DNA of 64,000 nt from contig PDIP01000087.1 in assembly GCA_002811645.1 (NCBI GenBank), positions 75,678-139,677 on the forward strand, written 5' to 3'. This stretch comes from Corallochytrium limacisporum Hawaii (Eukaryota > Protista > Pluriformea). The notes below the pieces were generated by a model. That model was not told the DNA's origin and did no database searches. It saw nothing but the letters and a program-made list of their open reading frames with translations. Position 1 is the stretch's first letter. Every line of letters starts with the position of its first letter. Shown piece after piece: positions 53,443 through 63,694 of this stretch. A program made the translations under genes and the position numbers.

Positions 53443-53524
53443 CAATGCTATTGAAATGTCAATGATTGGCAAAAGTGTATGATCAATGATATTGAAATGC
53501 CAATGATTTGCAAAAGTGTATGAT
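53443..53524. repeat. 41-bp tandem duplication (2 copies, 3 mismatches)
   Basis: CAATGCTATTGAAATGTCAATGATTGGCAAAAGTGTATGAT followed by CAATGATATTGAAATGCCAATGATTTGCAAAAGTGTATGAT. Confidence 0.9.
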
Positions 53525-53569
53525 CAGGGCACAGTTTCAATCAGTCACATAGGTATTGTACAATTGGAA

Positions 53570-53601
53570 ACAATCTGAGGTAAGTACACAATCTGAGGTA
53601 A
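53570..53601. repeat. 14-nt direct repeat at 18-nt spacing
   Basis: ACAATCTGAGGTAA occurs twice. Confidence 0.8.
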
Positions 53602-54326
53602 AGCGTGGACAAATTTTCGTCACTATAGTCATGTGAATCCGTTGTCATTCGGGTTCGCATAGTAAGTGTATCTCTTAGTCAGAGGACGTCAGAGGACCAG
53701 TCTGTTTATACCACAGTTGGAAAAAATATCAACGACCCGTTTCGGATATGAGAGGGGAAGAAGCCATCCGTCTCAAGCGGAGAGCAACCGTAAGCTGGGC
53801 CACCTGAGGAAGTCGTTCACACGACACAAATTCAGACCGGTTTTCCTGGTCCTACCACAAAGAGCAAAAGCAGATTCGGCCCGCATTCAGGAGAGTATAG
53901 GTCTGGTGACGAAAAACAAAGGCGGTTTGGAACAGCATAGAGGCGAGAAGGATAGAGTAGGGTGCTTGTTCTGATACCGCATCTGGGAGCTCCTATAACT
54001 TCGTCACCCTGGACCCAACCCAAATGGGCTATGTCTATGTTCGTTAGCTTATCCTAAGCTTATCCTCCTGCTTCAGTTTTGTCATGATCCGTACGCATCC
54101 ACCTAGAGGACGCTTACATCTTACTCGGTCGAGCATGTGCAGATCAAATGTTGGCTGACACCTTCTGTATCACTTCGATCTTGTGTGCCTGAGCATAGAC
54201 AACAAGACCGTTCCATATCACTGCATGATAGATAGAGGAGGATTCCTGATGATGCTGGTGGCGGCAACTCTCTAGCCTTATTCAGAAATTGAGCCATGAA
54301 AACAAGATAAAAGGACACAACGAGAA

Positions 54327-54431
54327 AGGTATTTAAAGCCCCCGGAGGATCTTGACAAGATTTCGTATACAGATCAAAGCACCAAGTTATCAAAGATATC
54401 GTTAAATCGCTTTTAATACCAACTAATCAAA
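54327..54431 (+). promoter_or_regulatory. Conserved TATA-like/5'UTR cassette, copy 1
   Basis: AGGTATTTA...GAGGATC...ACAGATCAA shared with the region upstream of 63155. Confidence 0.6.
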
Positions 54432-54737
54432 ATGAAGGTCATCGGAGAAGTTCTTTTTATGCTTGCTGCCACAAGCAGCATGCTGCATACCGTGCAGGCC
54501 GACTTCCCCCGAAATGAGGTCGTCATTGGCACAACCGGTGCTGCGGTGATTGGCACCCCTGGAGTCGGCGTTGCCAGCCTCCCAGATGTTGCCATTGCCA
54601 GCGTTCTTGATGTAGGAGTTGCCAACAACTCTGAGGTTGGCGTCATCGGCATTACCATTCCCATTCCGGCCGAAATTGTTCTTGCTGATGGATCCACCAG
54701 AAAGTGCTGCCCCATCGGCTGCTGCTTCTGTTGCTAA
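54432..54737 (+). CDS. Secreted peptide precursor, family member 1 (octamer repeats plus C-terminal CCPIGCCFCC)
   Basis: Signal peptide MKVIGEVLFMLAATSSMLHTVQA, homologous to those at 59961 and 63155; repeats VGVASLPD/VAIASVLD/VGVANNSE/VGVIGITI. Confidence 0.8.
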   Translation: MKVIGEVLFMLAATSSMLHTVQADFPRNEVVIGTTGAAVIGTPGVGVASLPDVAIASVLDVGVANNSEVGVIGITIPIPAEIVLADGSTRKCCPIGCCFCC

Positions 54738-55261
54738 ATCTGTGACTAAGACAGGAGCACCCACTCAATGGTTTGTTAATGGTGGTTTTCTTTCGGTGTC
54801 ACCGTGACAAGCCCGATGAAGACGTACCGGGCTCGAGAATAATGGTGGTCGCCCGGTTTCGCCCGCCTCGACATGACTCCGGGTGCGAGGGACATGCACG
54901 ATTTCAAACTCGGCATCGTTCAGACCTCGACAATAGAGACTGTCCCTGCATGCACAGAGAGCATGGTCATCCACAGTTCCCTCGACTTTACAAAAACTTT
55001 GGTGCAAGCCGGGAATGACAGACGAGCTCACTCCGGCAACGCGAATTTTGAGGTTGCCACAGCCCGAAAGGAAACGACAACGAAACTGAACAAAGAACTT
55101 CATAAACGTCATTTACTTGATATGGAAAATTACCAACGTCCAGGCAAAATGCAATCTAGATATCGTATTCTTCTTCAGGGGTGTGTGCCATAATTTTTGG
55201 GGAAACGCAGGGTAACGACACGGCAGGAACTCACCACTGGGAAAGTGAACGGGGGCCTATT

Positions 55262-55909
55262 TTATGCACTCACCATCACCCATAGGTCAGCTGGTGGAAA
55301 CATACCGTAACGACGCGACGGGGGAGGGTGGGTGAAAGGGTTTAAGGTTTCAACGAGATCACTGAATGAAAGTACAATATTGATCGGTGCGGATTCTCTA
55401 ACAGGAACGTATTCAACAACTGCGTCATGCTCATTCAGTCTGTGAGCAGTCTGCCAGAGCTGCAAATCCAAGCTAGAACCCAAGAGGAGGGCCCTGACGT
55501 ACACGATTATGTTTAGCATGTCTAGGTTAGAAAGCAGGTGTTTCGAAGGAAGAAGGCTCGTGAGGGTTGATGATCGCATGCTTCCTATTCTATTACAGGG
55601 ATGACACTTTTGACTCCTGCATACTTGCCACTTTGCTTTTCTTCTCCAGCTTGGGACGAACTCCCACGTTGGACTGTCCGGGTTCAGGTCAACGTGCAGT
55701 TGACATCGGTGCAACTCGTGGTCGAGCAAGAAGGAGGATGGATGGAGGAAGTGGTTCTGGCAACACTTGTATACGTACCTGCAATCGCACTCAAAATCAA
55801 CCAAGACCACGTGTGGGATGTCCAGGTAAGCGATCGGTATACTCCTGGAGGGCAAACCTCCAAGATTGTAGACAGAGTCGGGTTTGCGATATGTATTGTT
55901 ACTCAACAC
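55262..55909 (-). pseudogene. Unidentified ORF or degenerate gene convergent with secreted gene 1
   Basis: 215 open codons without an ATG start; protein-like composition; weak similarity to the ORF at 61733-62014. Confidence 0.3.
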
Positions 55910-58160
55910 CTTGGTCCACTATCCTTTTGCTGTGTGTCAGCCTAGGCTTAATGCTAACAGTCTCTACAGTCTTCACGTCTGGTGCACACAAGTCGTATGC
56001 TTCCTACTGCGCCAGTCTGGCCAAAAAGCCACCGATCATCAAAGTGAGGAATTTCTGGACATGTGCATGCATGCCAGAACTCCTGTGTGTCAGGTAGTAG
56101 GGTTGTAGAGAGAAACGGACAAGAAAGGGACAGCAAGCCTGGTAGAGACAAAAACGTGTGTTCCACTCGGAGTAAACGGCAATATGACCCATCCGGACCG
56201 CTAGTTGATCGCCTGAAACCGATTGGAACAGGCTAAACAGGGGCCCTGCAAATACACAATTTCCGAAGGCCACTCCACAGTACGAAACTTACGCCTGGCT
56301 CTCTTGGGGGTTCGGCTACGCATCAGATTAGGATCTAGGCCCACCCAAATTGGACCCCCCCGGGGGGGGCCAGGGAGTGAGAATACAAGACCTTTGGGGG
56401 AACACTGGCAAGGCGATCTTGCAGCAAACACTTTCCCCTGTCAAAGAGATAGCAAAATGTCCCGTGGTCCACAGTTTGTTGCGATGAATGGGAATGTGAA
56501 CGGGAACGGCCAAGTGGCAGGAAAGATGGGGTGCCACCAGTGGAGGCAGAAGAGTTCAGGATCGTGATTCACTGCGGCACCATAGGGGCGCCTGAAGGCC
56601 GCCTTTGTAGGTACTACGGTGTTGGGTGATAAAGAGATGAAAGAATGATCCTGCACGTTGACAATTGGAATCGTGGGTGAGACGATGGCGCAGTTAAGCA
56701 GAATTTAAGACAACAAGAGAGCACGGGTACTGCGCGAGCGACACGGCTACCCTAGCCCACTGACCGAAAACAACGCGGTGGCCGAGCAGTCAAGGTACCG
56801 ATACACACATGCAAAGCGCTATCAATCGAAACAGAGACAATCCAAACCCGAGATGGAGCCAAGAAAGGGCAAACTGAGAGACTAAGAATCATGTCATTAA
56901 CTAGTGATAAAATGTATAAATCTATATGTATGTATAGAATCCCATAATAACAGAGCGTTGCTGACAAATGCAGTCAGTGTTCGGGGTTGATAGCAGCAGG
57001 CATTTGGGGAGCCGCCACGGTGTCCGAACCGGGTGGGGGATGCTCTGGTGGCATGAGATAAACTGTACGGCCTGCACATGTAATATACAAAAAAAAAAAC
57101 CTCCCCACCTAACACTTGGGGAGCACTATCGTACCTCAGGAAAGATAAGCAGAGATGGGGAGCCGTGATTCTGGGCGTTGCGGGGTAGGGGCAGGGCTGC
57201 TTGCATTCTCCCCCCTACTACACTATAGGGCACGGGCCAAGGGTTTCAAAAAACAAAACCTTGGAATTTTTCGCCTGGACATTGTTCATCGGGGGAATGT
57301 ATTAACTGTCAATATCTCATCATCCCGTACGATAGACAAGCCACCATAGAGAACCATGCCCACTGCGGTACCCGAGAACCGAGAGTGCAGCGAGACTTGT
57401 CAAGAGACCCAGACTAAAGCGGGCACAGTGTGGCTTTTTTTTTGTTGCAGGGCAGGTGTCGTTCCCTTGTATGGGCGGCTGGCGAGATAGAGGTCCACAA
57501 GGCTGTCTTCAACCATTGGAATTTTCTCTCTTCAGGCTGTCGCTTTTACACACATTCCTAGTACGCGAATACTTGAGGACACGTATGGTTCAGCTGATGC
57601 ATTCCACCATCATGCATGAGGCGATCAGTGATCATCGGGCGGACCGAAGTGAAACCGGTACCACCCCGCTTCCCCTTCCCTGGGCAGGTGGCCGGTCATG
57701 GCTTTTAAGCCCAGTTTGTTCCTAGAAAACCCTAAAACCCCACTCCGAGGATCTGCTTCTGGCCGTGCCGATACCATGAATCCCCCTCTCTATTGTCGGA
57801 CCAATTAAGCCTTGGTCCGTTCGTCGACGACTGGCTTTTACCCAGTGCTGAGAAAGGGAATGTACAGAGTATCATCTCACCAATCCCCAATATTTTTAAC
57901 TTACTAAAGATCTCAATGGGTGAACATCTTCGTAACCAATGTCAATGCATTGTGGTTCGAAAGCATATGTGGATCGGACCTTGGAGGCCGACTACCCTAT
58001 CGTTTCCAATAATGGTGGCCTGTGGTTTCATACGGCTTTTTGTGTAGGACCAAAGGACTACCCCAATTGTTTCAACATGCCCTGAACTCATTGAACAAAA
58101 CCTTCTATTTCTATCATCAGCCACATCACCGAAATAATCGACATCAGTATCACACACCAC

Positions 58161-58187
58161 CATCATCATCATCATCATCATCATCAT
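58161..58187. repeat. (CAT)9 microsatellite
   Basis: Read directly from the sequence. Confidence 0.95.
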
Positions 58188-59336
58188 CACCAAGCATCTT
58201 GTCCCAAATCGTACTGGCGGGGTGCAATCTAGGCGCATGGCTAACAGTGGCTCAGCTAGCTTATGGAGTCTTGTTACCGGGCTGTCTGTTTAGGAAACAA
58301 TCTATTAACGAAATCATTAGATGCCTGCCATGCGTCATCTGTGAACACATCAACATGGACACTGTGATCTCTTGCCATCATCTTTGCCTCGTCGTATGCA
58401 TTGGCTATGGTGAGGAGTTTGCTGTTTGCTGCAAGTTAGACTCTTCGGTAGATTTGGCACTGATTCACGTTTGCAGTCTAGCGTGGAACCCGTATCTTGG
58501 TGGGTCTAAGGTCTGAACTAGACAAAGAAACAAGCTAACCCTAACCCACCAATTTCGAATGCATAGTCCTACGAAACCGCAGGGGCACAAACAATGGGCT
58601 GCGCAACGACCGAAGACAATATCCCGCCTTATTGCTCCGCAGCAAAAATCACCTTCCTTGGTGGTGCGCATTCGGACTCTAAAACGGTAGCGGCCACAAC
58701 ATCTATTAAGGAGAGGTTGACAAACTACAAAAGCAGCCAGAGAGCGTCTACAACCCAACTGCAAACCACCACGCTGAAAAGGCATGGTACTCCAATTCTG
58801 ATGGCGCTTCTTCGTCTCGATGGTAAGATCATATTTAATTGTATCATCTCAGTTGGAAGATATTATCTCAGTTGTGTTGATGCTCCATAAAGCTAAAGGC
58901 CAGAGATCGACCAGTGCAAGATGTACGGAGATGCAGGGGCAAGCAAAGGATCGCAGACCAGCTATATATGCAGACCAACGATTTAAGACCAAAATCGGAC
59001 GTCCTGATTATGTCAAACAGTAGTGGAAGGGGTGACCAAGCTTGATTAGTCAACCCGCAAGATTCCTGAGTTGCAGGAGTGTAGATAGTGCTGTTCACGA
59101 TACACCATGAAGAGGATTCATATCGTTGAACATTGTGATCTCTGGGGAGCATATTAGTTTCGGCAATCTCTTGACCTTCCCCGCCTATAGAGCGCCGCGG
59201 CGGTGCAGAGACGGAGACACTCACAGAGACAGCCTCGGAGAGATCACAGAGGGACGGCGAGCCAGGGGCGGCGGTGATAAGGTGAAAGTTGGGGGGGGGG
59301 GAATTAGTGAGAACGAGAGAGAGAGAGAGAGTGCAG

Positions 59337-59340
<4 letters not shown>

Positions 59341-59379
<39 letters not shown>

Positions 59380-59450
59380 TGTGTGTGTGTGTGAGTGTGT
59401 GTGTGTGTGTGTGTGAGTGTGTGTGTGTGAGTGTGTGTGTGTGTGTGTGT
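59341..59450. repeat. Interrupted (GT)n microsatellite, ~110 bp
   Basis: Read directly from the sequence. Confidence 0.95.
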
Positions 59451-59865
59451 GGGAGGTGGGGGGGGTGGAGACTGCCCACGGGCAACAAGTCCGTTCGAAG
59501 CCAACCCCACCGAAGCAATTTGGAACAAGCGGATAGGTTTGAGCGTAAAGAGACATTCTGCCAAACCCTGCGAGATTCAGGGGAAAGGAATAGGGCGCGC
59601 GCACCCCGGTCTCCAATTTGGGGGAAAAAGGGGGAAAAGGAGGGTTTCAGAGGACGAACCGGCAGTCAGCGCAGCATGCCGCAACAATGTATGTATCTGC
59701 CTGATGAACAATCACATATATCTTTGGCTCTTTAAAATTGCGTGTGATTGATGTAGCTGGCTCTTTATATGGAAGAATCTTTGAGCAAGCCTGAATTTGG
59801 GGATGTGAAGGACGCAGACGGTACTACGAGAAGAGGACAATCAACGTGGGGAGTGTTCGAAGGTT

Positions 59866-59960
59866 CAGCTATTTATTGGAAAGAGATTTGATGAAGACGA
59901 ACTGAAGCACAACAAAATCAAACAGATTGAAAGCCATTTTTGAGAAGCAAATACACGATC
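59866..59960 (+). promoter_or_regulatory. Conserved TATA-like/5'UTR cassette, copy 2
   Basis: CAGCTATTTATTGGAAAGAGA...GATGAAGAC versus CAGGTATTTATTGGAAGGAGA...GATGAAGAC upstream of 63155. Confidence 0.7.
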
Positions 59961-60748
59961 ATGAAGTTCTTTGGAGAAGCACTGTTTCTGATGGCTGCCA
60001 TGAGCAGCCTTTTGGACGCCGTGCAGGCCATGCCCGTTCGACACCGTCGGGAGGCCGACAGCCTTGCTGGAACCAACCTCAACCAGATCGAGATAATTGA
60101 CGGCAGTGAATCCGAAATTGATACCATCATCCGAAATCATGCTGCTGTTGGACGTACTCCTGCCAGTGAAAGGGGCCCTTTGCCTCGCTCAGGCAGCCCC
60201 CGCCTTGATGATCCCCGAGGCCCAGCCGTCGTTGGCCTTGCCGGCATTGAAGACCCCGCCGATGCCGCACGTCTTCTGGCTNNNNNNNNNNNNNNNNNNN
60301 NNNNNNNNNNNNNNNNNNNNNCCCCCGTCTTGCGGATAGAGGTCCAGCCGTCGTTGGCCTTGCCGGCATTGACGACTCCGCCGATTCTTCCAGGCGCACT
60401 AAGTCTCGCTCCGCCGCCCCCCGCCTTGAGCCTACAAGTCCCCCTCCCGTCGTTGGCCTTGCCGGCATTGAAGACCCCGCCGATGCCGCACGTCTTCTGG
60501 CTCGCCGTGATTCTCCTAGGGTAGGTGGTATCCCTGCCCGTGAAGATGATACCCCAGGCCCAGCCGTCGTTGGCATTGCCAGCATTGACCCCCGCGGCCC
60601 CCGTCTTGCGGATAGAGGTCCAGCCGTCGTTGGCCTTGCCGGCATTGACGACTCCGCCGATTCTTCCAGACGCCGTAAGTCTCGCTACCGCGGCTCCCGC
60701 CTTGATGCTACACGCCCCGCACCCGCCGTTGGCCTTGCCAACAATTGA
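59961..60748 (+). CDS. Secreted multi-repeat peptide precursor, family member 2 (spans the gap at 60282-60321)
   Basis: Signal MKFFGEALFLMAAMSSLLDAVQA, then RHRR-EA, then at least six VG(L/I)A(G/S/N) cores. After the gap the repeats continue in the frame starting 60323 (PRLADRGPAVVGLAGIDD...) to TGA at 60746-60748; the ORF track shows the wrong frame there. Confidence 0.75.
60217..60745 (+). repeat. Coding tandem repeats (GTCGTTGGCCTTGCCGGCATTGA core) with a 276-nt higher-order unit
   Basis: CCCCGTCTTGCGGATAGAGGTCCAGCC recurs at 60323 and 60599. Confidence 0.9.
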
Positions 60749-61494
60749 AGAATCTGCCGACAGCGATCGCCTCCCTGGATTCTCGGCCGGGTCAGTGACA
60801 CTCTAGCTGGCGACCCTAAGCCACGTCCCCTTAGTCTGTCTGTGCTTATACCAAAAAGACCCTTGCCCCCTTCCTGGAGGCTCGCGTTCTCTAAACTGTT
60901 AGCCCCTGGTCCGGGGTCGCTACCATTGATTCCAATAAGTTGCCCCATCTATTTGTTTGTACAGTGGCAGCACTTCGTCTAATGCATAAAAAGATAGTAT
61001 GCAAATAAAATGGGTTTTTGATACCACCTACCTAGTAATCAGTGTAAATAACATGCTTAGAATATGATGATTCCGTATCTGAATATGCGCCAGTACGAGG
61101 GAAAGTAACAACCAACGCGCAGAGCTTGAGGGCAAGGCTCGGGATGCAAGTCACTTGCTGGCTTGGCCCGGACCTCAACAAATCGGGGCAAATTACCATT
61201 CCTCAGTTCATGCTGACCATGGAGGCCACATTATTCTCCGGTAACCCAAACACAAGAAGAACCTTGCACACTGGGGAACGGCATCGCTCTGCAACCTACC
61301 TCCAAAAATGATTTTATTTGGGAACAAGCGTCACCTGGAGAGTTTCACCTGTCCGTTGTGGAATACCTGCCACAATATCAGATCCATCCACCATGCGCAG
61401 AAATCATCAATCACCATCAAACTGCATGCCACCAAATGGATAAATCCAGTCACACACACCACCATCCAAAGAGTTTGTAAACCATAGCATTCGA

Positions 61495-62150
61495 TTAGAA
61501 CTTTCTTTGACTAGAGGACAGGGCGCCACTGTCTCTCCTCCCGGAGGCGCGGCCACGCGCGTGTGCAACTAGAGACAAGAGCAGTGACATCACGTTCTCC
61601 AGTCCTGAAGTCTTACTCACAATAGAAAGTACATTGGAAAGTCCATCCAAAACCTTAAACCAGTAACGAGCGGATTTCTGTTCCACAGACGTTAAAGCAA
61701 CCATGTGTCTCTTATCTATCACTTCCGCGAATTCAACTACGCTCCTCTTCCGCCGGCACTGGTTTCAACACTGTCGGTGCATGCCTCAGAAAGTTCCGGA
61801 GCCATAACATCAGAATGTGGCTCTGGTCACAAGGGACAACGTAGAAATCACCAGTGAAGTTTGCTGGCATCGACCATTCTGAGTGTTCGAACGGAACATG
61901 AAGCAAATCAGACTGACGCATCACCTCAATGGTGTCCGCCTCCACGGCGAAGTCATATCTCCCTAGAAACCAAAGACCGCAAGACGGGATTGAGGGACAA
62001 AGTTTCGCCACCAAGCGCTGACCCCATAAAATACAACCTACTCATTGTTCTCTGTCGGATCACGACGCCCGGGGCCCCCGAGGGCGTACTTCAAAAAGAA
62101 CGAGTTCAACTTCAAAAAGAAATCCAAATGAGGACCCGTTGTACGTAAAA
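61495..62150 (-). pseudogene. Fragmented unidentified coding-like sequence convergent with secreted gene 2
   Basis: Consecutive protein-like ORF pieces (62038 onward, 61733-62014, 61495-61722) broken by stops and frame changes. Confidence 0.3.
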
Positions 62151-62460
62151 TCACTGCTCCATGTTGTTGATAGTGGTGCCGTCGTGATGCTGGCAAAAAA
62201 TGCTTTGCTGAAAATACAAAGCTGTCCACCGGATGTCCAGCCCCCACCCGCCCTCCCTCTGATATGGCGGAGACGGTATTCAGAACTGAATCCACCACCC
62301 CCGCCTGAGGGGGTGTGACCGCTGGTGGGCCAGGGGACCCACCAAGAACATTTCCCGAGGGTTGGAGGGTGGGGCTGTGTGGAACCTGGGTGAGTTGGAG
62401 GTTGTGCGTGTAATTTTCCTTACTGTCGCAGCAAGTATTGTCGCTGGGGGCGTTGGGGAG

Positions 62461-62734
62461 NNNNNNNNNNNNNNNNNNNNNNNNNNNNNNNNNNNNNNNN
62501 NNNNNNNNNNNNNNNNNNNNNNNNNNNNNNNNNNNNNNNNNNNNNNNNNNNNNNNNNNNNNNNNNNNNNNNNNNNNNNNNNNNNNNNNNNNNNNNNNNNN
62601 NNNNNNNNNNNNNNNNNNNNNNNNNNNNNNNNNNNNNNNNNNNNNNNNNNNNNNNNNNNNNNNNNNNNNNNNNNNNNNNNNNNNNNNNNNNNNNNNNNNN
62701 NNNNNNNNNNNNNNNNNNNNNNNNNNNNNNNNNN
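62461..62734. other. Assembly gap
   Basis: N run flanked by G tracts. Confidence 0.99.
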
Positions 62735-63051
62735 GGGGGTGGGTCCGGACAATAATGCCGCGTTAGGCATTTGTGTGCAGACGGACCCCGAGCGTCCCAT
62801 TCTCCCCCGCCATCTACAGCCCGCAACTACCCAAAAGTCCGTACGCGCGTGAGGGACAAGGGCGTATGGAATAGCCGCTGGGAACGGATGGCAGGACTGG
62901 GGGATGATCACGGCGAAGATAGAAGCGTCCCTGTTGGTTAATGTGTCGAGCATCACCTAATTGTGCACACTTACGGCCAAGCCTTCGGTGGAATAGAGGC
63001 TGAGCAGCATCTGTCAATCACAAAACTGGCAGCTTTGAAGGTCCGAGTGCT

Positions 63052-63154
63052 CAGGTATTTATTGGAAGGAGAGGATCAGATGAAGACCAGAGCACAGATC
63101 AAGACACAAGGTGATTTGAAGACATACTCAGCCCTTTAACTTAAACTCTCAAAC
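63052..63154 (+). promoter_or_regulatory. Conserved TATA-like/5'UTR cassette, copy 3
   Basis: CAGGTATTTATTGGAAGGAGAGGATCAGATGAAGAC...ACAGATCAA; shares blocks with both other copies. Confidence 0.7.
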
Positions 63155-63694
63155 ATGAAAATCGTTGGCGAAGCTCTGCTCCTCCTGGCTGGTATTAGTA
63201 GCATGTGGGACATTGTCCAGGCCATGCCGAGCGAGAACAGTGAGGAGATTGGCTCCGAGGTGAATCTTGAGGCTGCGGGCGACGTTGTCCAAGCAAGTTG
63301 CACGAGCTATACTTACGAATTGGTAACGAGCACATGCATGACGAAACTTCCCTGTTCGCCTTACAAATGGACTAGCCGAGTGTCCTTGGGAGTTGGTCAG
63401 ATCACATCCCAGGGTCCGTTTGTCGACAAGCAGGGCAGTGGTTGCACCACGATTCACGAGTTTGCCCAAAATGAACTGAAAATGACGTACACTCCCAGTT
63501 CGTCTAATGGAAAAGTTCCTCTCATGGGCCAGGCGGTGTTCGTCCAAGGTCAATCGATCCCTCCCATTGACAATAGGCACATGGAAATGAACACCCCTAA
63601 TCTAACACCCGGACAAATTACCTATGACACGGCCGATTTTAAAGGAGCAGATGATTGGTTGTGTATGAACGAGTACAAAATTTCATGTTTGTAG
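63155..63694 (+). CDS. Secreted 6-cysteine protein, family member 3
   Basis: Signal MKIVGEALLLLAGISSMWDIVQA, acidic spacer, then a ~135-aa beta-rich domain with six Cys; clean ATG context (AAACATG). Confidence 0.82.
   Translation: MKIVGEALLLLAGISSMWDIVQAMPSENSEEIGSEVNLEAAGDVVQASCTSYTYELVTSTCMTKLPCSPYKWTSRVSLGVGQITSQGPFVDKQGSGCTTIHEFAQNELKMTYTPSSSNGKVPLMGQAVFVQGQSIPPIDNRHMEMNTPNLTPGQITYDTADFKGADDWLCMNEYKISCL

Follow-up and report, generated by a model that had tools for sequence, protein, structure and literature searches.

A mostly subtelomeric Corallochytrium gene family in which a common promoter-and-leader module probably heads unrelated secretory cargos

Three neighbouring genes (g1, g2 and g3) that open with a common 23-residue leader peptide were analysed in a 64,000-nt stretch of the genome of Corallochytrium limacisporum Hawaii (GenBank assembly GCA_002811645.1, contig PDIP01000087.1, positions 75,678 to 139,677, forward strand), hereafter the window. 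Corallochytrium, a unicellular relative of animals, is a free-living saprotroph. The window forms the final 64 kb of its contig (C272), and the assembly comprises 24.1 Mb in 286 contigs. The reading that we consider probable is that these genes belong to a Corallochytrium-specific, mostly subtelomeric family of the secretory pathway, in which an inherited 5' module has been joined to unrelated cargos. An earlier interpretation, made from the letters of the window without database searches (the sequence-only reading), had proposed a shared promoter, 5' untranslated region (UTR) and signal peptide driving three different secreted payloads; parts of that proposal stood and parts had to be narrowed, as described below.

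The three co-oriented, plus-strand open reading frames (ORFs) and their shared leader were confirmed by two approaches. A degenerate pattern of the invariant leader positions gave exactly three matches in the 64 kb and none in 100 shuffles, and an unguided repeat finder recovered an 86-nt leader block (65-71% DNA identity) among g1, g2 and g3 as well as a promoter block of g2 and g3 (81% identity). No other repeat among the three genes, including 3' or downstream sequence, was returned by this finder, so the duplication is confined to the 5' end. Public annotated (EVM) gene models exist for all three genes, and the genes have no introns.

Each leader starts with MK and has an acidic residue near position 6; a hydrophobic core about 12 residues long (maximum Kyte-Doolittle 10-residue mean of 1.8-2.8) leads up to D-x-V-Q-A. 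In all copies, position -3 of the predicted cleavage site is V or A, position -1 is A, G or C, and the next two residues are M, L, R or K and then P. These features would fit a cleavable signal peptide of the endoplasmic reticulum. A mitochondrial presequence and a membrane anchor were rejected on the basis of the acidic residues, the one basic residue and the core of only about 12 residues.

Across the genome, the strict leader pattern was matched five times, compared with zero for the control, and a hidden Markov model (HMM) of the leader scored 18-60 bits for members and below 8 bits for background (approximately 150 kb of sampled sequence). This separation, together with the unrelated signal peptide of a second secreted family described below, indicates that the leader is specific to the family and distinct from the generic signal peptide of the organism. 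The sequence-only reading had named a generic motif as the outcome that would count against it, and the HMM result instead supports a family-specific N-terminal leader with signal-peptide features. Differences between leaders are more frequent at synonymous (pS 0.60) than at non-synonymous (pN 0.30) sites, which indicates that the leaders are old and held by purifying selection on the peptide, without recent copying or homogenisation. Recent gene conversion was ruled out as the source of the leader similarity, given that synonymous sites are near saturation.

The conserved region extends upstream of the leader. TATTTA was found at -102, -91 and -99 in g1, g2 and g3, exactly where it had been placed before, and in each of the 13 copies inspected across the genome a TATA box (mostly GGTATTTA) precedes the ATG by 91-105 nt or is replaced by a variant that aligns with it. 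In most of these copies, GAGGATC lies about 15 nt and CAGATCA about 40 nt 3' of the TATA box. The shared upstream blocks that had been described for the window are all real, but they are shared in pairs, with TATTTATTGGAA and GATGAAGAC common to g2 and g3, GAGGATC and ACAGATCAA common to g1 and g3, and none present in all three genes. Mean DNA identity between cargo classes (defined below) is 27% far upstream, 48% from the TATA box to +45, 36% in the rest of the 5'UTR, 62% over 25 leader codons and 36% over the next 15 codons. The promoter core is better conserved than synonymous sites, and the 5' module has diverged about as much within cargo classes as between them. With regard to repeats further upstream, a (GT)n microsatellite of about 57 units (window positions 59337-59451) lies approximately 420 nt upstream of the g2 TATA box, and a (CA)n run is similarly placed upstream of a repeat-class copy on contig C207 (L010, about 1301-1360).

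Downstream of the leader, similarity between classes ends at residue 35 by BLASTP or at residue 37 by profile-profile comparison (hhalign). The comparison of leader with cargo divergence that had been suggested as a check came out in favour of a conserved leader, with 62% identity in the leader, 36% in the next 15 codons and cargos that are unalignable between classes. Of the three different payloads that had been claimed, the lack of alignment between classes stood; the window, on the other hand, holds two kinds of cargo, as g1 and g2 are related, and the third kind was found elsewhere in the genome.

Protein and pattern searches of the genome identified at least 14 leader genes at 10 loci. 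This copy number is a lower bound obtained with degenerate patterns and protein queries, and 13 copies were inspected. Cargos were assigned to three classes: class A (six copies, on contigs C258, C270, C99 (two), C202 and C238, all outside the window), class B (g3 and copies on C207 and C50) and class C (g1, g2, copies on C190 and C207, and probably one on C52). The C52 gene is the probable 14th member (C52:5885-6190, plus strand); it has 28% identity to g2 residues 1-102 (E 9e-5) and lies within a 222-codon open frame (stop to stop) near the contig start. The window (C, C, B) and C207 (B, C) each hold a cluster of more than one class, and both g1 and g3 have cargo paralogues on C207.

Of the nine loci that could be tested, eight are no more than 10 kb away from a contig end, a zone that makes up at most 24% of the genome (P 7e-5), and seven are transcribed toward that nearby end. 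Telomere repeats were found at the start of C270 (CCCTAA, L048:1-16) and at the end of C202 (TTAGGG, last 20 nt of L060), in both cases 2-5 kb from family genes, and none was found at the window's own contig end. The overall picture is that of a mostly subtelomeric birth-and-death family.

The g3 cargo is predicted to be a compact domain. The six cysteines that had been noted in it were confirmed and are invariant among its paralogues, of which the C207 copy is 40% identical. A structure model built from the three-paralogue alignment had a predicted local distance difference test (pLDDT) score above 90 for most of residues 50-179 and took the form of an eight-stranded beta-sandwich, for which the leading structural matches were all C2 domains. 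VIA-align Z scores were 9.2 (C2 of cPLA2), 9.1 (a C2 domain) and 9.0 (C2 of perforin), values of 8-9 being barely higher than the background stated for the tool, and Foldseek E-values to C2 domains were about 3e-3. The model aligned with C2 domains over 105-116 residues. The fold thus resembles that of C2 domains, including the extracellular C2 of perforin and the N-terminal C2 of Notch ligands, but sequence identity is only 5-10%, and at E up to 1 neither g3 nor its paralogues matched Pfam C2 (PF00168). In keeping with this, the modelled g3 domain is described as having a C2-like fold and is not called a member of the C2 family. C2-like beta-sandwiches often bind membranes. The six cysteines may form three disulfides, and g3 would be a stand-alone secreted domain. 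In the C50 copy (L003:1330-1974, C50:138391), a TAG replaces the conserved CAG of the leader; the public model of this copy (P0008) splices out 33 nt, which avoids the stop and loses the hydrophobic core.

Class C cargos are rich in V, G, A and P, and all contain a P-x-V-G-h-x-G unit, for which reason g1 and g2 are regarded as two branches of one repeat class. The g1 cargo and that of the C207 repeat-class copy (C207b) are 44% identical across their length. In g2, the repeat array is interrupted by an assembly gap that, as written (40 N), puts the two sides in different frames (59961 and 60323). Past the gap, the 60323 frame is open and encodes repeat peptides like those before it. The repeat period is 276 nt on the intact side and 221 nt across the gap, so that a true gap of 95 nt would restore both period and frame; g2 is likely to be one continuous ORF. 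The published g2 model (236 amino acids) bridges the gap by an artificial join or splice. Six 44-nt cores and the 276-nt higher-order repeat cover most of 60171-60748, and multibasic stretches separate the repeat blocks in g2 (RR, RRRK) and in the C190 copy (RK..RR, three fragments). In g2 and C207b, the leader is immediately followed by an RR|E site. A single P-domain convertase is encoded in the genome (P_proprotein 82.6 bits, an 816-amino-acid open frame on contig C7). Judged from its coding sequence, g2 has the architecture expected of a multi-core peptide precursor.

Intact class A proteins have approximately 720 amino acids; they match an RTX-type repeat weakly and are rich in cysteine at the C-terminus. 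In this class the leader similarity fades gradually. Their structure model was poor (pLDDT 41). A Pfam search of eleven family proteins returned nothing above threshold, the sole hint being the weak RTX nonapeptide in class A. The coordinates of class A genes include L048:2957-5110 (minus strand), L057:592-2760 (minus strand) and L060:1405-3426 (plus strand), and the weak match, to the RTX-type calcium-binding nonapeptide, lies near residues 515-550. The C270 and C238 copies have a C-terminal cysteine pattern typical of inhibitor cystine knots, and the C202 copy (674 amino acids) stops short of the cysteine tail. Two tandem copies on C99 (155607-156922 and 158841-160200) are broken, one by a frame change together with an in-frame TAA that comes after 39 codons and the other by a frame change between its halves.

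In order to find relatives outside the genome, word-indexed searches of 5.8 billion clustered proteins were performed with g3, class A and the repeat part of g2, and these returned only models of Corallochytrium itself. A HMMER search of 1.84 billion representatives with a class B profile returned the three paralogues and one weak bacterial repeat protein, which was judged to be a spurious match. No usable match was obtained in an ESM Atlas feature search with the C207 repeat protein, and the strict leader pattern had zero matches in JGI metagenome contigs. These results support the claim of an undescribed family in a unicellular relative of animals; by these searches, it is specific to Corallochytrium in the collections covered.

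Positions of the features in the window are provided in Table 1. The second assembly gap is intergenic, about 320 nt upstream of the g3 TATA box, and bears only on the distance and linkage between g2 and g3. The surroundings are gene-poor and include a tandem duplication of 41 nt with 93% identity at 53443-53524 and, at 58161-58189, a perfect (CAT)x9.7 run.

Table 1. Features of the three leader genes and their surroundings, in window coordinates
Feature	Position	Strand	Description
g1 5' module	54327-54431	+	TATTTA at 54330 (-102), GAGGATC at -87, CAGATCA at -62, 5'UTR; aligned with 12 other copies
g1 ORF	54432-54737	+	101 amino acids, intact
g1 leader	54432-54500	+	23 codons ending VQA, predicted signal peptide; leader HMM 55 bits
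g1 cargo	54501-54737	+	V/G/I-rich P-x-V-G-h-x-G-type repeats, one RK site, 10-residue tail with six Cys
g2 5' module	59866-59960	+	TATTTA at 59870 (-91), TATTTATTGGAA block, GATGAAGAC
g2 ORF	59961-60281, assembly gap, then 60323-60748	+	stop at 60746-60748
g2 first part	59961-60281	+	leader, HRR|E site, spacer and first repeat core, up to the gap
assembly gap in g2	60282-60321	.	40 N, inside 276-nt repeat array
g2 after gap	60323-60748	+	five more PAVVGLAG-type cores between RR / RRRK sites; six in the gene as assembled
second assembly gap	62461-62734	.	intergenic; no ORF touched
g3 5' module	63053-63154	+	TATTTA at 63056 (-99), GAGGATC at -84, GATGAAGAC, CAGATCA at -60
g3 ORF	63155-63694	+	179 amino acids, intact
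g3 leader	63155-63223	+	23 codons, predicted signal peptide; leader HMM 57.5 bits
g3 short N-terminal region	63224-63289	+	first ~12 residues (MPSENSEEIG...) still shared with large class A proteins
g3 cargo	63290-63694	+	six-Cys beta-sandwich, C2-like predicted model

Under the favoured reading, the inherited module would have four parts: a TATA-box core promoter about 100 nt before the ATG, with transcription presumably starting about 30 nt after the TATA box; the two conserved blocks just 3' of it (GAGGATC and CAGATCA); the signal peptide of 23 residues, which would be cleaved and in which MK and a hydrophobic stretch of about 12 residues precede a site with V or A at -3 and a small residue at -1; and about 12 further residues (MP.E....IG), with unrelated cargos past residue 35-37. 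The products of g1 and g2 would be P-x-V-G-h-x-G repeat pro-proteins whose dibasic sites could be cut by the single Kex2/furin-type convertase of the genome, and that of g3 would be a disulfide-stabilised C2-like beta-sandwich. Members would be under common regulation, and recombination near chromosome ends may have brought the module to different cargos.

Several observations weigh against this reading. Part of what had been called a promoter cassette is general promoter grammar: the TATA 14-mer (at most one mismatch) occurs 23 times in the genome, compared with twice for the control, and heads at least five genes of the second secreted family, with their ATG at +97 to +99. The homologous promoter and 5'UTR blocks of the original proposal thus stand, but the TATA 14-mer and its spacing of about 100 nt are found in an unrelated secreted family as well, and the leader family is defined by the downstream blocks and the leader. 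Members of the second family (about 204 amino acids, starting MSFKQ, with a different signal peptide) carry the 14-mer with one mismatch; the sites are C33:242510, C91:7543 and C100:14098, 24634 and 28055 (L026, L031-L034), the three on C100 being clustered. No intron or other obvious recombination joint was seen at the module boundary, cleavage of the leader is predicted from sequence features, and some copies are decaying, with stops or frameshifts in at least four members of the family.

The expression data also belong among these points. Two small runs with the same species label were available as contigs, with the library type guessed to be RNA. One 1601-nt contig at a depth of 63, of uncertain library type, covers 53508-55108 and includes g1, and no contig was found over 55109-60280, nor were RNA words for g2 or g3 present in these two small runs. 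Such uneven coverage argues for RNA, which the contig over g1 probably represents. It starts about 820 nt upstream of the g1 TATA box, however, which is a poor fit to a simple TATA-driven start; an overlapping transcript, a long UTR and DNA are all conceivable sources of the contig. This contig begins in sequence without a convincing ORF and ends approximately 370 nt after the g1 stop.

A further difficulty concerns the repeat cargos, whose elastin-like composition would also suit structural proteins that are not processed. Under this alternative, they would be extracellular wall or matrix proteins cross-linked through their Cys tails and not peptide precursors, which we regard as possible but rather doubtful. 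It would account for a composition of mainly V, G, A and P with P-x-V-G-V-x-G units, for the Cys-rich tail and single dibasic site (RK, before the tail) of g1, and for the 11 heptads with only two dibasic sites of C207b. It does not account for the presence of a convertase gene, nor for the multibasic stretches placed regularly between the repeat blocks of g2 and the C190 copy and the RR|E site after the leader in g2 and C207b, an arrangement that corresponds to Kex2-processed repeat proteins (KEPs; PMC6339444). KEPs are defined as secreted proteins with at least three similar motifs between KR, RR or KK sites and with repeats making up at least 15% of the protein (PMC6339444). Like these proteins and yeast alpha-factor precursors, g2 and the C190 copy have at least three similar cores between RR/RK/KK-type sites, here behind a leader with signal-peptide features. 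The motif count and the repeat share of at least 15% are both reached in g2, and a Kex2-type protease is encoded, whereas g1 does not qualify. Unlike KEPs, which were defined in fungi, the fragments between sites are long and unequal, with no evident STE13-type XA/XP trimming signature, and g2 is likened to them from its gene sequence.

Ordinary paralogy was also weighed against the favoured reading. One secreted gene could have been duplicated, with mature parts diverging or being truncated beyond recognition and the N-terminus remaining constrained, in which case the module never moved. The age of the leaders (pS 0.60), a module as diverged within as between cargo classes, the one heptad shared by all class C cargos and the gradual decay of leader similarity in class A are all compatible with such a history. 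It is nevertheless considered unlikely, as a C2-like sandwich of 130 residues, low-complexity V/G/P repeats and 720-amino-acid proteins share no profile similarity past residue 37, and DNA identity switches abruptly from 62% to 36% within 15 codons.

An inherited 5' module on unrelated cargos may also be read in a stronger form, in which the module is a dedicated regulatory and sorting cassette that was spread by recombination near chromosome ends and that produces a co-expressed secreted set. We give this form little credence. If it were true, the set would consist of prohormone-like precursors cut by a single convertase, a membrane-binding C2-like protein and large knottin-tailed proteins, and SSMLD.VQA.P plus the next ~12 residues would be read by a specific partner, e.g., a sorting receptor or a processing enzyme.

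It is very unlikely that the cluster is largely non-functional, made up of decaying subtelomeric copies and of annotation artefacts at a contig end that is poorly assembled and has few genes. Two assembly gaps, the artificial join needed by the g2 model, the four or more members with stops or frameshifts, the lack of RNA words for g2 and g3 and of relatives outside the species in the collections searched would all be expected in that case. However, g1 and g3 are intact ORFs, and the model of the g3 domain, built from three sequences that all keep the six Cys, exceeds a pLDDT of 90. The leader has a lower pN than pS, synonymous sites are less well conserved than the promoter core, and the depth-63 contig covers g1.

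The favoured reading, that of a family with one inherited 5' module and unrelated cargos, was compared with known systems. In conotoxin superfamilies and amphibian skin-peptide precursors, a conserved signal and short pro-region precede divergent secreted products, and the cargos are variants of one Cys scaffold or peptide type under diversifying selection. The analogy drawn in the sequence-only reading holds for this organisation but not for the cargos, since here the leader heads unrelated architectures and different folds rather than variants of one scaffold, and nothing suggests a venom or defence gland. Yeast seripauperins and Plasmodium rif/stevor are subtelomeric multigene families of secreted or surface proteins. 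The present family resembles them in its birth and death at chromosome ends, its orientation mostly toward the end, its conserved N-terminal targeting sequence and its frequent pseudogenes; it is without sequence relationship to them, its cargos differ in kind and not only in variable loops, and nothing points to antigenic or expression switching.

The SSSGP/SSGP salivary effectors of the Hessian fly are encoded by clustered genes in which the promoter, 5'UTR and signal-peptide region is conserved and the mature protein is highly diversified (PMC2955719). The non-coding parts of these genes are almost the same, with conservation of 3'UTRs and introns as well, and concerted homogenisation has been proposed (PMC2955719). 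These genes are the closest organisational parallel, as here too the promoter, 5'UTR and signal-peptide region is more conserved than the mature part. Unlike in SSSGP genes, synonymous sites of the leader are near saturation and the rest of the 5'UTR is only 36% identical; moreover, 3' similarity was not found, introns are absent and the cargos are different folds. Corallochytrium, moreover, is a free-living protist and not a parasite.

The family is a new lineage-restricted example of a known organisational theme, and what is unusual about it is the presence of one old, constrained 5' module on unrelated folds. The result so far is descriptive and lies within one species. Secreted peptide signals and convertase processing are central to cell communication in animals, and to our knowledge the state of both in unicellular relatives of animals is poorly known. 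Corallochytrium offers candidates in this respect, namely a precursor with several cores, a C2-like domain that would be secreted and a compact module of promoter and leader that unrelated cargos have in common. Experiments in this organism could use the module as a promoter and as a tag for secretion. Should recombination near telomeres have joined the cargos to the module, the family would clearly illustrate how a reusable 5' end gives rise to new secreted genes.

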